Positions 48,615 through 56,239 are shown, counted from the first letter of the stretch. The stretch is 64,000 nt of DNA from Entomortierella parvispora E1425 (GCA_020891255.1 BQFW01000015.1:1674001-1738000), one strand, 5' to 3'. Made by a program: numbers and translations. The notes: generated by a model from the sequence alone, not told the origin.

Positions 48615-49061
48615 ATGATAAAAAACTACCGCATTTTTAGTCGTGTGCGTTGATCGGGGTTAACGCGTTCTTGCAGTCCCCCCCCCCCCCCTGTGCGTGT
48701 CTTCTTCACTCCTGAACTCTTCATATAGCTCTTCCAACATGTGGGCAACATCTTTCGCCGACTCACACGGAGATTGGTGCCTGGAGGGATTTCTGTTGAC
48801 CGAGAATCAGAGGACCACTTCTTCGAGATCCTGAACCTATTGCGCAAATCGAAGAGACTGTCGAACGTACTCAAGGGAACAAAGCAGCTCGCCAGGAACG
48901 TGGGCATTTTAAACCCCACGGGACTGATTTACGAAGGCTCAATCAGGACACCAGTGGGATCCCCAGTCGACTTCGTTGCTTTTTCAAGAAGGGGGCTAGT
49001 TTTTTCGGAATTTACACAGGCGGTACTGTATGATTTAGTCGAAGTTCTCAAGTTGCACATA
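48615..49061 (+). pseudogene. 5' part of a small unknown gene interrupted by the Fanzor element (frame resumes after 55350)
   Basis: MIKNYRIFSR|intron 48645-48728|LFQHVGNIFRRL...LVEVLKLHI; removing the element rejoins the frame to AIDWFTNDRATISFRPRVPTVWTASSGWTV up to a GTATGT donor at 55444. Confidence 0.55.
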
Positions 49062-49199
49062 GGTGTACAGTGGCAGGCACCTATTCCCAACAGTCCAAGA
49101 GTCAGTGAAAACGAACCGTCAACAAATTAACAGATCACATGATACGACGCGCGACATTCAGTACCGTAAAAAAATATGGCTTGAAGTCATTCTTCAAGC
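49040..49199 (-). ncRNA. Candidate Fanzor omegaRNA (scaffold about 49199-49062 plus a flank-derived guide)
   Basis: 131-nt gap between the Fanzor stop and the element end, with a perfect hairpin GCTTGAAG-AATGA-CTTCAAGC at 49179-49199 overlapping the stop. The position is that expected for TnpB/Fanzor omegaRNAs. Inferred; no expression data. Confidence 0.45.
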
Positions 49200-52100
49200 A
49201 TCGTTGTTGTTGGCGTGGTCCGCGTGGTCGGCGAGATCCGCAAGCTTGGCCTTTGCAAAATCAAGAGGAGCAGGCCACTCTCGTTTACGAAGAAAGTGTA
49301 TGGCCGCATGCGACAGATTCATGGCAGAATTGTGGTCCCGGTCGCGGCTCTTGTGGCACTCGTCGCAGATGACCGATCGGCCCTCCTCTTTCACGCGAAA
49401 GTGGCACGAGCAACAAAACACTGAAGACCGAAACTCGGGCATCTTGACAAGCTTGATGACAGTGGGCCTCTTTTCCTTGTTCCTGGCAAGGTCCTTGGCC
49501 AGATCTCGCCTCTATTTCATCCAAATAAAATTCCAGATATTAGAAACCCGTCTTCACCAACACTCCACCCGCACACTCACACTCATAGATTGCCAGCGCT
49601 TGCCTGTCTGATCAAGTTCTCTGTGAATTTTCCACATCCATGACTCTGACCCTTCCACCGTCGATAATCCCCATCTCCAACACCAATAATGAAGGGCGAG
49701 GCTAGAAACTCGTTACGATCGTGGTCCGAGAGACGATTCAGACTCAGATAGCCCCTTTTGAACAATGATCTAGCCATCTTTTCCAGGCTTTTGACGACAG
49801 GGTCCGACGACAAGAAAGCATGGAGTTCATCACCCGAGAGCTGGCCAGAGTCTTTCGTAGCATTTTGGTAAGATATCCAGTCGTAGCTTTTGACCCCTGG
49901 TAGAGCCTCGACATCCTTCTTGGCCTTCCTGGGGTCCTCCAAGACAGTGTTGATGATCTTCTGGAGATCATCCGCCGTCGGCTGCCGATCGGGAACAAAG
50001 TGCCGCATCTTGAGAACTGCAGTGGTGGCTGAGTCGAGATCATGACGGATAGCTTCACGGTAGTCATACTTGTCTTTCTTGAACTTCACACTGCCGTAAT
50101 AACTTCGAAGGGTTGGCGACTCTTTTGCTTGGCTCACGATGTGAGTCTTCACCGCTGACTCGAACTCTTGGGCAGCCTGGATCATGGCTGCGGTCAAGGT
50201 CATCATGCCCATCTCTGTTCGCGATGACTCATCGCCGGAGCTCGTTTGTACGTCTTCCATGGCTAGGCCCGTCTGTGCTTCGTTTTTTTCTTGGACATCC
50301 TCCATGATTTGGTCCCGATCTCCCTGGGCAATCGTCCCGACCTGGACCGGCTTTATCGATACTAGCCTCGCCTCGACGTCTGGGATCCCTTTTGCAGACT
50401 TGAGATTACTTTGATGCTTGCGGTACCGTCTGTTGATTGTGTCTCTGGGGCCGCGAGGAATGACCAAGTTGATGGCATCATGTTCAAAGTTGGAGTGCAC
50501 CAATGTGCCTGTGGCTGTGCAGGCGACTCCTGGGTCCAAACAAAGAGCTCGGATGCCAATTTGCGGGCCTACAGTGCCTTCGTGCAGCTTGTCGATTGTA
50601 CCCTGTGTGTTGAATTCATCATAGATGTATGGCCATCCATTCAAAACTGGTGCAGTTGACCAAGGCAAAGCTGCACCCAACGCCACTACTGATACTAGTG
50701 CAGGTGCTGGCAGTGGCTCACTCGATGTCTGCTTCTCGGGGCTTGGAGGGAGATTTGATTCCCATTCCATCTCGATGGAAGTAGAGAGAACAGGCCCAGT
50801 ACTGGATGAATCATCCACAGCCAACCGAGACGGACCGGCGGAACTTGAAGTGAACGACCCCTCCGCGACATTCGACGCTGTTGTCTTTGCAGCTCGTTTT
50901 TTCTCGGTCAGTTTGTAGGCCATGACACGCAGATCGTAACCATTCGTTGAGAAATCCCCACTCAGAACGTATTTTTGTCGCTTGGACCCTGGGCTGGCAT
51001 CGTCGATCTGCCTTTGATAACGTTCAGGGCTCTGGAGTCCATCACGTACAATGGATCTGAGCTCATCCTTGGTGGCTTGATAACTAGAGTCACTAGCGGG
51101 CATATCATCCAGTCTCGCCGAGACTTCATCAATCTATTCGACAACGTTTTGCTCGAGGAGCATCCTCGAATAGAGGGGTAGCGATTGCAGAGCACATTTT
51201 GTACTGCTCGATGGCAGAGATGACGAGGACGACGAGGACGAGGCATTCAAGTCATCGTTGGCCCAGAGCACGTTTGCCCCACGGCGATAGCTGGTATTCT
51301 GACCGTTGAGGAAAAGGTAGAAGGAAAGTCGTCCGACCTCGTCCTGCGTGTTGGCGTCGGCTAACATCTTTGCTCCAAAAATACTGTTGAGAATCTGGGC
51401 TTGTCGGTCCTTCTCACTTATGCCTCTTTTGCGACTGTTGGTCAACCTGCAGTCTTTCTGAAGACACGCAACCAGTTGGCGCTCAGTCGCCGTGAAGAAT
51501 CCGTCGGCGAACCCGACTTCTGGCAGAGTTTTGACCTGAACTGCTGCGGGAAGCATCATGTTCATAATCAAGTGCATGCTAAGCCGATCGTGTTTGTCAG
51601 ACTTGCCGTCGTCGTTGATCGAGTTCAACAGTTCCTTTCCACAGACAGAGGAAGCCCAGGCAGGGTTGTTGAGAATGACCTATTACAATGCGCAGTTAAA
51701 AATTCGGTGTGGTTAGAGTCATGGTGAAGCTCGCAAAGAATAGGATAGCTTTTGTTGCAAGGACTTACCCTCTTCTTTAGTTCCAAAGTAAATTTGAATA
51801 CATGGCTCCCGACCATGTCAGAGAGACCTCTTGCACATTGCTCGATGAATGCTTTGTCACAAATGTCTCCGTCATTATGTAAGAACGGCTTTGCACTTCG
51901 AGTTTCGGTGAGCTTCTTGTACTTCTCGAAAAGATCATCAGCATCTGTTGCTGTCTTTGACGTAGTCTTGCCGAGTCCAGAATCATCAGAGCCCCAGTAG
52001 ATCATTCGACGGAGAAGTCGCTGGAAAAATGGGCCACAATACGCTGGGGTTAAGAGATTATTGAACCGGCTCCTCCTCTCTTCTGCATCGCTCAGCGCTT

Positions 52101-54714
52101 GGTCGCCATCAATTGCCGGGTACTCCTTGAATACGGTCGCGATGTAGAGCTCCGTCGCCAGGAGACCCTCACGTAGGAGATCGGAATGGACCTTGGCCAT
52201 GGTACGTATGACAGTGACGATGTACTTAACCAATGTTGTGCGGTCGTCTTCGCTGAGCGACGGAAACGACTTTTTTACGCTGTGAGAGAGGCATGACTCG
52301 AGTCGGCCAGGTCTCATCGCGACCAGTGGAAAATGGCCACCGACAATGTCGCCAATGATATTGGTGGTATTTCTCTTCCGAGACTTTACATCCGCATTTT
52401 GCTCGGCAGTTCCTTTTCCCTTCATTTCCTCGTCTCGGGCCCTCCTCTTGGATGGGGCGTAGGTCGTCGTGCTCGGTCGCTTTCTAGATTTTTTTTTCTC
52501 CTCGGCCTTTGCTTTTTTCTCCTCGGCAGCCTTCGACTTTTTCTCCTCGACCTTCGCCTTTTTCTCTTCGGCAACCCTTGCTTTTTTCTCCTCGGCCTTT
52601 GTCTTCTTCTCTTCGGCCTTGGCCTTTTTCTCCTTGGCAGCTTTGGACTTTTTGTCCTGTGGGACAGACTCAACGGTCTGAACATCCTCATCGGCTGGAA
52701 AACTGTCTTCGCCCTCCTCTCCTTCGTCCTCTTCACTATGATCTTGAATTTGAGAATTGGGAGCAGGTCGGCCAATGGTCATGTTCCTACAGCCGATGGG
52801 CTCAGTGTTCTTGCTTGGATTTATGTAGACCGAAGAGAATGCCTTGGGGCAGTATTTATGGCCAGAGGAGTACCGACAATAGCTGTGTTTTAAAGAAAGA
52901 TAAAGACATGAAAAAGATAGGAGTTGAAAAAAAGGTCAAATGCCTGTCGTATTTCAGTGCAAACATCGAGCAGCAGGATCATTGGTCTTACCCTCGACGG
53001 TGCTTCTTTTTCAGCTTTACTTCAGGATCGAGATCACTGCTTGTGGTGGTTGGAGGAGGTGTTGACAGTTCGACGGTTGAGCCAGCATCGGGCTCTGGCG
53101 GACAAAGTGCCAACACGCTGACGATATTGTCCGTTACCGCATCGAGCTGAGGAGAAATCAACGCGGCTGACGACACGCTAAACATGTTCATGGCCGACCC
53201 TTCATCTGATTGGGGCCTGCGCGACTGACGATACCTAAGATGGCAGTAAAGTGGCAATGCACAAGTCATGATGAATACATTGGTTGGTAGTTATAACGAC
53301 AGGATAACGTCTTCCGTGAAATTTCACCCTTACCGGCTCGTCAAAACTCCCAAACGAAAAACTATCCTGCGGATCGAGTCGTCGAGAACGTCGTTGACCT
53401 GTTGGTTTTGTTCAAGAAACGTCTCTTGCAGATTCACAAAGCTACTGATGGACTGCTGGACATTCTCAACATAATCCTTTTTCTTCGAGCAGAATTGAGC
53501 GACATGCGCCTCAACAGTAGGATTAATGTCCTCGCGAAGCAAATCCTCTCGGATGGCCTTCATTGCCTTGATGGCGCTATTGAACGACGTCCGGCCGATG
53601 CTTGGGTCATAGTCATTAAGACTTACGACGGCGCTTGCGACCCACTGCTCTTTTGATTCAAGTCCACAAAATGTAATCATTTCCTTGACAGGGTAGGAAT
53701 AGAACCGGGTGCCTCTAGGTTGGAAACGAACGAACTCCTTAATCCCCATGAACATGAGATCACTGTCGGTGGTCACCACCGTGAGGTTTGGGTCATCCCG
53801 GGCCAATTTTCAAGCGCAAATGTCGAACTGGCCATCGCAGACGTGCGAACGCCACCCATGGGAGTCATGGAGTTCACGGGCGACATTCTTAGTTGTTCGG
53901 GGGTCAACACTACGGCACTTGAGCCAGTGTGGAAACACGACGCGCCCGAGATACTTCCTGAGCCGATGAAGCTGATTGTTGGATAGGTTTGGTTTTTTTT
54001 CGATTCTAACTGTAAAAGCCGTCTTTCGGTCGAAGCGAGCATGTCAGACATTTTGACAGATACAGGTAGGCTGGCTTTGAGCCGACGTTCACGGGCAAAA
54101 GCCTTCTCAGCTGTAGGTGTCCCATCGTAATGGATATAGTCAGACGACTTGCTGTAGTTGTTGTCAAACATTTTGTCCATGGACCTGGCAAGAACAGGCA
54201 ATATCTCGTCGCGCGCACTATTGAGTTCGTGGCAGACATTGTCTGGAAGTGGCTGCGATCCTGGTGGGAATGAAGCTGACACAGAAGAAGCTGGCCCAAA
54301 ATATGACGGGGGCTGAATAAGCGGCTGTCGTGGAACAACCGGGATTGTTGTGGAGGGGTTCTTGTTTGAGGTCGAAGATGGGCTTGAGATGTGAAGTGCG
54401 GATATCCTTTGCGGGACGCTGACGGATACGTCTTGGGAAAATGAGCCATCGGGCCGTTCAGCAGATGGAAATTGCCACAATTTGTTTTCCTTATCCCATT
54501 CTCCCAGGGGCAACGGGGAAGCCGTGGTGCTTGCTGTGCTAACTTCCTTCGCTTGCTTTTTGAACGCTTTGAGGAGAAGACGGCCTTCTGTATTTTTGAG
54601 TCTGATATAGGAGACTGCAGATCCATCGATATGACACCCATCTAAGGACTTGGGGTCGATGACTTTGATGGCCTTACAGTCTTTCAGAGGCGCAAAGGCA
54701 TTAGCGACACCCAT
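49194..54714 (-). pseudogene. PIN (XPG/FEN-like) nuclease-Fanzor (TnpB-like RuvC) fusion, about 1710 codons over 5 exons; 1 frameshift and 2 in-frame stops
   Basis: Exons 54714-53334, 53234-52992, 52882-51769, 51679-49604 and 49511-49194 join in phase. PIN motifs: MGV..., HIDGS, HYDGTPTAEK..RERR, GW..HVCDGQFD, VVTTDSDL, NDY. Fanzor motifs: LSGDFSTNGYDL, LCLDPG (RuvC-I D), IIGVGDG, MPEFRSS (RuvC-II E), CCSC...CDEC (zinc finger), RDRDHNSAMNL (RuvC-III D). Confidence 0.85.
52490..52650 (-). repeat. Lys/Glu/Ala-rich 7-8 aa coding repeat (KAEEKK)
   Basis: KAKAEEKKTKAEEKKARVAEEKKAKVEEKKSKAAEEKKAKAEEKK lies between the PIN and Fanzor parts. Confidence 0.8.
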
Positions 54715-56239
54715 GCTACAAAGGACAAAGACTACAGCGCTATTAGTACCTGGATAAACTGTTCTGCAACAGCAAAAGTCATGTCAATCTACCTGAAAAA
54801 GCGCAAAGCCTGGACGACAATATCAACCGAGTCAACTCGAACTTCTACCAAACATGACATAGACAAAGTAGAGGAGAAGGTAAGAGCGACGGTGGAGATG
54901 CTGCTTTTGCGATACAAAACAAGAGATAAATACTGCGCACGCACTGAAGCTGCGATTACGGGTAAGTGCTCGAGAGGATTGAGATATAGTAAAGTGGAGG
55001 AGACTAGTGTATGTGTATGTGCGTGGAGTAGGGGCAGAGGCGAATGGGACGATGAAAAGAATGGGAGCGAATGAATGACCACGAATGGGACGGACACGAA
55101 ACAAAAGAACACGAAAAGGCGGAAACGCGCATCCATCAAAGTCACGTGCACGGAACAAGGGGCGATACCCTTAAATATAGCCATCTCTCTCCATAGCGAC
55201 GTTGCTGTCCCGGCCAGAAGCGAAAAGAGCACATAGCCTTGAGGGTGTGAAGGGCATCAATCGTTTTATGAAGTCCATGATGATCAAATGGTCTCGCTTT
55301 CTTCTTTATAGGAGTTTTCGCGTTTATGTTGGGACTAGGTGACGTGCACCATAGCAATTGATTGGTTTACTAATGATCGTGCTACCATATCTTTTAGACC
55401 GAGGGTTCCAACCGTTTGGACTGCGTCCAGCGGATGGACAGTCGTATGTTAGCTTATTCCATTTGTATTCTGTTCATGAGCTCCCTACGCAAATGAATGA
55501 TCTTAAAATACACTTCCAAGATTTGACCAAGTTGATACAGATCCGGGTAAGTTTCTGATTTTCAACGGCAGGGTCAGTATGTATGCTTCTTGCCCTCTCT
55601 GTCGAACAGCATTATCATTTGACTGAGGAATAAATGATGAAGGTATCTGAGGGCATCTCTGTTTGCTACGGTTTATTCAAGCCTTGACTGGTACTCGAGA
55701 CAAAAAGATGATATGTAGCCTCGAAAGGGAGCAGCGAGCGCGCGCGCTGCACGCACAGGAAGATCCAAGATCGCAAGTGCAGCCACTTCATTAAACCAAT
55801 TCGGCGAGAACGCGTTTCGCAGTCACTGAACATTGCCGCGAGGGATGTGCCCCAGCAGGTGGAGTGGGTTCCCTTCTTCTTTTCTTTCCTCTTATTCTTC
55901 TTCACTCCCTTCCGTTTCATTCGCCATCGCATCCACTCCACGGCTCTTACATCCTACTCTTTTTGCTCCATCTCTTTCTTGCATTCCTCCTTTTCTTCTC
56001 TCCCTCCTTCCCTCCTTCCCTCCTTCCCTCCTCCCTTCCATCACGCGACTCCCCATCGCTGATCCTTTTTATTGACGCGTCTCATCGCTGAGTGCCAAAA
56101 AAGAAAAAAAAACAAACAGCAGCGCAAAAGCACCACTATCGACTTTCATCCTTCCTTCATATTCCTTTGCTTCTCTCTTTCTGCTCTTCCTTCAGCGCTC
56201 TGGTCAACCTTCGCGTGCTGTTCATCACGTTCACTCGCT

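Follow-up and report, generated by a model that had tools for sequence, protein, structure and literature searches.

The DNA analysed here, called the window below, is a stretch of 64,000 nucleotides (nt) from Entomortierella parvispora E1425 (GCA_020891255.1, BQFW01000015.1:1674001-1738000), with positions counted from its first letter. On the minus strand, between 54714 and 49194, it carries a gene in which a PIN 5' nuclease of the FEN1/EXO1/XPG type is fused to the RNA-guided nuclease Fanzor, an arrangement first proposed from the sequence of the window (the original prediction). Five minus-strand exons were found to join in phase via four introns. The exons add up to 5132 nt, and addition of one base gives about 1710 codons, in line with the total estimated earlier. 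Exon 1 (53334-54714), starting with MGV at 54714, encodes the PIN nuclease domain, and is followed by a low-complexity linker in exon 2 (52992-53234). Exon 3 (51769-52882) begins with an acidic and Lys/Glu-rich linker carrying basic stretches that resemble nuclear localization signals, and then enters the N-terminal, REC-like region of the Fanzor. Exon 4 (49604-51679) encodes the REC/WED-like region, the RuvC-I Asp of LDPG and a conserved GDGDY block, while exon 5 (49194-49511) encodes the RuvC Glu, a C4 zinc ribbon and the RuvC-III Asp, and ends with the stop codon at 49196-49194. The introns were 89-109 nt in length, with a GC content of 0.37-0.45 against about 0.50 in the exons. Introns 1 (53235-53333; GTAAGG...AG, 99 nt), 2 (52883-52991; GTAAGA...AG, 109 nt) and 3 (51680-51768; GTAAGT...AG, 89 nt, with a CTAAC branch site) are all of the GTAAG...AG form, and intron 4 (49512-49603; GCAAGC...AG, 92 nt) belongs to the GC-AG class. 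Splice signals and in-phase joining thus agreed with all four introns as originally placed. Within the linker of exon 3, a 21/45-nt tandem repeat (52493-52639) encodes a Lys/Glu/Ala-rich part, and the long open reading frames (ORFs) on the plus strand over the same region are mirror images of this repeat coding and not genes.

The motifs of both halves were located by direct reading of the codons. For the PIN half, the claimed FEN/XPG motif series was identified in exon 1 as HID (54636-54619), HYDG (54135-54115), GQFD (53833-53813), TDSD (53773-53750) and NDY (53623-53606), with a Ser/Pro-rich insert of about 110 amino acids after the first of these motifs. For the Fanzor half, the D-E-D triad and the CxxC...CxxC ribbon stood exactly at the predicted positions: the RuvC-I Asp codon GAC (LDPG) at 50536-50534 in exon 4, the relocated RuvC Glu codon GAG (PEFRSS) at 49436-49434 and the RuvC-III Asp codon GAC (RDRDHN) at 49337-49335 in exon 5, and the C4 zinc ribbon at 49415-49353, composed of CCSC (49415-49401) and CDEC (49367-49353).

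Evidence that the two halves form one gene came from relatives. An exhaustive HMMER search among 1.84 billion representatives with the 506-amino-acid Fanzor piece gave 40 relatives (proteins and loci are referred to below by P and L numbers, respectively); a word-based search with P0036 recovered P0036 alone. The long relatives P0029, P0030, P0032 and P0034 carry, in one protein, the MGVEG start, FDG, GEAD and DSDF, with IDPG and GDG further on; exon 3 of the window gene matches P0029 and P0030, as well as P0024. At three loci, an uninterrupted contig ORF runs from the PIN part through the RuvC part without an intron (1196 amino acids for L003, 1211 for L004 and 1168 for L009), each spanning MGVEG, GEAD, DSD, IDPG and GDG. 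These three loci contradict the possibility, named in the original prediction as evidence against a fusion, that PIN and Fanzor never occur in one ORF. Every locus with enough upstream DNA (the window, L001, L002, L003, L004, L007 and L008) had the PIN part upstream of, and on the same strand as, the Fanzor part, and so did L010; L005 and L006 were cut by contig ends. L010, a metagenome contig that came up as the sole locus of a single-protein metagenome scan, belongs to the same subfamily as the window gene, overlaps P0002, and is intact from the PIN part to the contig end.

The intron positions were also conserved. At the level of protein positions, L010 shares with the window the donor of intron 1, the acceptor of intron 2 and both sites of intron 3, all being GT...AG, and the position of intron 3 is shared by L005 as well. 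The position of intron 4 is common to all subfamilies, its donor being GC in L003, L005 and the window, and GT in L001, L002 and L004. Furthermore, the Entomortierella parvispora gene model P0025 is spliced at IRQ/KRDL, the same junction as that proposed for the last intron. It is extremely improbable that PIN and Fanzor are two neighbouring genes misjoined via in-phase pseudo-introns. The linker does offer many possible chance joins of the GT/GC..AG type in phase, but three relatives lack any stop codon from PIN to RuvC, the intron positions are kept in L010 and L005 at about 39-50% protein identity, and selection acts equally on both halves. The last point was examined for L009 and L001, the proteins of which are 84% identical: the ratio of nonsynonymous to synonymous substitution rates (dN/dS) was 0.21 in RuvC, 0.26 in both PIN and the middle region, and 0.34 in the linker. 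Most subfamilies retain the carboxylates at the FEN motif positions, and the RuvC triad shows full conservation. Both halves are under similar purifying selection in intact relatives. As judged from these comparisons, the two-gene reading is largely refuted for the family, and the PIN-Fanzor fusion is real at the family level. The claim of one gene was likewise sustained by the profiles and structure models described below, together with the uninterrupted ORFs, the colinearity and the conserved introns.

The nature of the PIN part was then assigned by profile and structure comparison. With a family-alignment profile searched against all PDB sequences, the 22 top matches were all FEN1, EXO1 or XPG (best E 2.5e-4), and the FDG, GEAD/DSD and NDY blocks aligned with their counterparts. 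By language-model features of P0034 residues 1-350, XPG_I, XPG_N or Pox_G5 was found in 97 of the 100 nearest named Atlas clusters. Searches started from single pieces of the window copy gave noise only, both for phmmer against PDB and, in the form of disordered proteins, for an Atlas search with the 313-amino-acid first ORF; no Pfam XPG match was detected in the window pieces. The AlphaFold model of the whole P0034 ORF (predicted local distance difference test, pLDDT, 79.7; predicted template-modelling score, pTM, 0.62) consists of a confident domain at residues 1-365, most of which reaches a pLDDT of at least about 90, a disordered linker at 369-500 (pLDDT about 30) and a confident C-terminal body at 500-1175. 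The fold expected of XPG/Rad2/FEN1 nucleases, a PIN-like FEN fold in which a helical arch lies between the N and I regions, is predicted for the N-terminal domain. When this model was compared with PDB by Foldseek, 43 of the 50 matches at E <= 1e-3 were FEN1, EXO1, XPG or Rad2, and the other seven were Fanzor1. For the FEN1/EXO1 family, the template-modelling score (TM) by target was 0.56-0.61 with a probability of 1.0, FEN1 giving an E of 8.8e-7 and EXO1 a TM of 0.61 with a root-mean-square deviation (rmsd) of 4.8 A over 339 alignment columns. Against Swiss-Prot models, the top 30 matches were all FEN1, each aligned from its residue 1.

Acidic residues occupy all seven of the FEN-type carboxylate positions (7/7) in P0034, P0029, P0030, P0032, P0041, P0042 and P0044, and six of the seven in the window and L010, in which GQFD (L010:507-533) replaces GEAD; we take the seven motif positions to be equivalent to the FEN1 active-site residues, an assumption made independently of a structural alignment. 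Since the intact L010 carries GQFD too, this motif is a lineage trait of the window subfamily and not a sign of decay. Altogether, the PIN part is a divergent branch of the XPG/Rad2/FEN1 superfamily and not a canonical member.

The C-terminal part was identified as a Fanzor by several lines of comparison. The last exon of the window gene matched Pfam PF07282 with 29.0 bits against a cutoff of 26.3 (E 1.2e-6), and the relatives P0036, P0008, P0014 and P0025 matched the same family with 32-47 bits. The last exon also matched the NCBIfam TnpB models, and the family profiles matched ISDra2 TnpB, mimivirus Fanzor2, Cas12f and PpFz1; a profile of the region from RuvC-I to GDG alone found no solved structure. 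Members of the Fanzor/TnpB group are defined by the motif D-X(125,275)-[TS][TS]-X-X-C4 zinc finger-X(5,50)-RD (Bao & Jurka 2013, PMC3627910). All its elements are present in this order in the window, in the form of the LDPG Asp, PEFRSS, CCSC...CDEC and RDRDHN. Between the Asp and SS lie about 200 residues in the P0034-type members and 338 in the window subfamily, where inserts take the spacer beyond the range of 125-275. In Fanzor1, the catalytic Glu (E536 of SPu-1-1p) directly precedes the [TS][TS]-zinc finger instead of occupying the canonical RuvC-II position. The same relocation was observed in the window (PEFRSS) and in every relative (E[FWY]R[ST]S), the canonical position being occupied by GDGD[FY].

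For the relative P0036, which includes the last exon, a model of pLDDT 72.6 was obtained, and its best structural match was SpuFz1 (E 1.2e-6). By VIA-align, 408 residues were aligned with SpuFz1 across model positions 1-636 (Z 14.3). The model of P0034 also matched GtFz (E 8.8e-7, TM by target 0.47), SpuFz and PpFz. Because the SpuFz1 match spans positions 1-636 of P0036, whereas Cas12 and TnpB chains cover just the RuvC half of the same model, the C-terminal body is predicted to be Fanzor1-like throughout the REC/WED and RuvC regions, and thus more than a RuvC domain. The models of P0034 and P0036 together gave the folds anticipated in the original prediction, a FEN-like N-terminus and a Fanzor C-terminus.

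The window copy itself carries three lesions. When the true reading frames were set by aligning homologues to the window DNA by tblastn, the first 210 or so codons were found in frame -2 and the remainder of exon 1 in frame -1, the shift being located in an A8 run at 53991-53998. At the corresponding site, the intact L010 reads LESKAQLSNRQL without a frameshift. The second lesion is an in-frame TGA (53810-53812) right after GQFDICA, aligning with Gly in L010 and Arg in P0024, and the third is an in-frame TAG (51134-51136) in exon 4. The homopolymer frameshift of the original prediction was thus confirmed, but it is not the single lesion as had been claimed. Because a frameshift and two nonsense codons are present, the window copy is considered to be a pseudogene with three disabling lesions, unless all three are assembly errors. 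An A8 homopolymer is a typical error site, and a separate contig set of the same sample disagrees with the window at some positions, but a functional copy disguised by assembly or sequencing errors would require that two distinct nonsense codons, both sitting in unique sequence, be errors as well, and we regard it as very unlikely.

The borders of the mobile unit were best seen in the subfamily of P0041 and P0030. L001:4358-8257 and L009:1792-5705 share 3927 nt at 88% identity, corresponding to a 3.9-kb unit that consists of the gene with about 107 nt on its 5' side and about 85 nt on its 3' side. The borders are sharp and the flanks are unrelated. Neither terminal inverted repeats nor an obvious target duplication was detected for this unit, and a CCGC-GAAA-GCGG hairpin is located about 20 nt from its 3' end. 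Because the shared DNA is composed of the gene and short ends, there is no room for a transposase. On this comparison, the locus in the window is best described as a dead copy of a single-gene mobile element without its own transposase. In Benniella, a second, partial copy of the Fanzor part (L002:208-1885, minus strand) is located upstream of the full copy in inverted orientation.

In the window, a candidate left-end inverted repeat (55327-55341) matches 49078-49092 at 14 of 15 positions; two such matches were found in the window against 0.43 expected by chance. This pair, about 6.26 kb apart and seen in one copy, may mark candidate ends of the window element, and its 3' member is conserved in L005. 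The 3' non-coding tail on the minus strand (49078-49193) is a candidate omegaRNA end, its stop-codon hairpin and terminal motif being kept in L005. The hairpin, of 6 bp, extends across the stop codon (49180-49200) and pairs TTGAAG with CTTCAA; L005 has TTGAAA and TTTCAA, a compensatory change. The block TGTTGGGAATAGGTG of the tail is also conserved in L005.

The exact window copy (49100-54800) was confined to two runs of one sample among 11 sequencing runs (X1-X11). The nine other runs of the same species label contained almost none of its 31-mers, and the three of these nine whose DNA contigs were aligned with the window carried copies of 80-90% identity at other sites. At an identity of 80% or more, copies of other strains can be aligned with the window between about 49170 and about 54752 but not beyond. 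These observations suggest a strain-specific insertion. On the flanks, plus-strand open frames are present at 48741-49076 and 55358-55558, neither with a Pfam family, and these could be the two parts of a host gene into which the element inserted. Joining of the flanks in silico was uninformative, because a third of all junctions are in frame by construction.

The named relatives all belong to Mortierellaceae (Mortierella, Benniella, Entomortierella, Podila, Gryganskiella, Dissophora and Haplosporangium), and the remaining relatives are contigs of metagenome and public-run assemblies; the element is apparently limited to Mortierella-type soil fungi. Most public gene models run through the last intron and lack the exon for the Glu, the zinc ribbon and RuvC-III (read-through regions: L001:7860-8175, L002:7300-7602, L003:4130-4445 and L004:3670-3959), which is probably the reason why the relatives are not annotated as TnpB or Fanzor. 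The public names include hypothetical protein, XPG-I domain-containing protein, 5'-3' exonuclease and Cas12f1-like TNB domain-containing protein, each of the names reflecting one half of the protein. The original prediction knew of no described PIN-Fanzor fusion, and none was found in the openly searchable literature, in which Fanzor occurred in no paper together with XPG or with Mortierella, subscription-only papers lying outside this search. A term search through the accessible text of the main Fanzor papers turned up no mention of a nuclease fusion in nature. A mechanistic study of the Cas12a R-loop was among the literature matches naming both TnpB and XPG.

With the solved Fanzors, PIN-Fanzor shares just 9-14% sequence identity. 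The window family resembles Fanzor1 (SpuFz1, PDB 8GKH; PpFz1; GtFz1) in many respects: the order of the Asp, the Glu beside the [ST][ST]-x-x-C4 zinc ribbon and the RD; the PF07282 last exon; the predicted fold of the relatives, which fits SpuFz1 over REC and RuvC; the location of the gene at the 3' end of a mobile element; and the presence of introns and of basic stretches like nuclear localization signals. Unlike Fanzor1, the family adds at the N-terminus about 365 amino acids folded as a FEN1/EXO1-type nuclease domain, together with a long disordered linker, and the element is without a transposase and, in one subfamily, without terminal inverted repeats. With EXO1, FEN1 and XPG of the Rad2 family, the PIN part shares a domain that begins with MGV at residue 1, the succession of the XPG-N and XPG-I motifs and, in most PIN-Fanzor subfamilies, seven carboxylates at the expected motif positions; the GEAD motif of the relatives presumably resembles that of EXO1. 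The PIN part differs from them in that the glycine motif of the helix-three-turn-helix (H3TH) is not conserved, XPG_N and XPG_I remain below the gathering score, the window subfamily has Gln in place of the first Glu of GEAD, and a Fanzor follows in place of a PCNA- or MutL-type interaction tail.

Two other systems bear comparison. Poxvirus G5 (PF04599) is the nearest named cluster to the PIN part by language-model features (0.95), a lead at the feature level only. This FEN-like nuclease is a protein in its own right and promotes recombination as well as the repair of double-strand breaks; unlike PIN-Fanzor, it is not fused to any guided nuclease. In exoCasMINI, T5 exonuclease is fused to Cas12f and raises editing efficiency (PMC12337685). 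As in PIN-Fanzor, a 5' exonuclease of the FEN superfamily is tethered in one chain to a RuvC nuclease of the TnpB lineage, but exoCasMINI is man-made to raise indel rates, whereas PIN-Fanzor is a natural, selected fusion of predicted activity, borne on a mobile element. A Fanzor1 with a fused FEN-family nuclease is a natural pairing that is new to the searchable literature.

TnpB-type nucleases cut sites free of the element, and recombination then restores the element; EXO1 performs 5'-3' resection, thereby committing a break to recombination. In the intact members of the family, an omegaRNA from the 3' end of the element would guide the RuvC site to a DNA cut, and the tethered 5' nuclease would trim the 5' strand or flap at the RuvC break in the manner of EXO1 in end resection. 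The flexible linker would let the EXO1/FEN1-type domain process the ends that its own Fanzor makes. Repair would then proceed by homologous recombination with the element-bearing copy instead of end joining, and the transposase-less element would be retained or copied in a host where end joining competes. We favour by a modest degree this explanation as a whole, namely a dead Mortierellaceae copy of PIN-Fanzor with guided cutting and 5' trimming leading to recombination in the intact members. A number of points weigh against it. The role in resection and homing is one that we purely infer, and the structural evidence was obtained from relatives that are 21-37% identical to the window pieces and not from the window protein. 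The Pfam XPG families matched the homologues below threshold (XPG_I, E 0.0095-0.087; XPG_I_2, E 4.5e-4; XPG_N, E 0.098), and the PIN domain of the window subfamily, with Gln for a carboxylate, may be weakened or differently used. As to the guide RNA, the folding signal of the 3' tail did not exceed that of shuffled sequence (z 0.5), and Rfam gave no match.

Other roles of the PIN part have to be weighed against trimming of the break. The PIN domain might act on RNA: it would either free or trim the omegaRNA carried at the 3' end of the element mRNA, or degrade competing transcripts. Some members of the FEN-fold family are RNases, clusters of the Herpesvirus virion host shutoff protein are among the nearest named Atlas clusters, a processing activity would be plausible where the omegaRNA overlaps the mRNA 3' end, and Gln replaces one metal ligand in the window subfamily. 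However, among solved structures FEN1 and EXO1, both of them DNA enzymes, come nearest (rmsd 4.8 A for EXO1), all seven carboxylates are retained in most subfamilies, and the RuvC of TnpB-type enzymes already processes their own guide RNA, so that an action on RNA seems rather unlikely. A slightly lower probability still is given to the PIN domain as a second DNA-cutting site within the R-loop, acting on the displaced non-target strand or a 5' flap, with RuvC and PIN each cutting one strand. Such a division would suit enzymes of the FEN family, which, like XPG, recognise 5' flaps and bubble junctions, and the roughly 130 disordered residues of the P0034 linker would give reach to the R-loop. 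The RuvC triad is, however, fully conserved, and to our knowledge RuvC alone suffices for cutting of both strands in known Fanzors.

Trimming of a guided break toward recombination thus stays the favoured reading for the intact members. A bolder version, in which PIN-Fanzors are autonomous single-protein homing elements and guided cutting plus EXO1-like resection suffice for copying into empty sites, is put forward tentatively and is on present evidence doubtful. If true, it would represent a natural "cut-and-resect" editor and a new mode of spreading for a eukaryotic mobile element.

For annotation, the lesson from this family is that a conserved last intron conceals the exon for the zinc ribbon and RuvC-III. 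We know of no RNA-guided DNA nucleases of eukaryotes other than Fanzors. The intact natural proteins of the family could be used for asking whether a tethered 5' nuclease alters the repair outcome. The fusion with an EXO1/FEN1-type nuclease, selected and present in multiple copies, would constitute direct genomic evidence that the breaks made by Fanzors are meant for processing, most simply for recombination.

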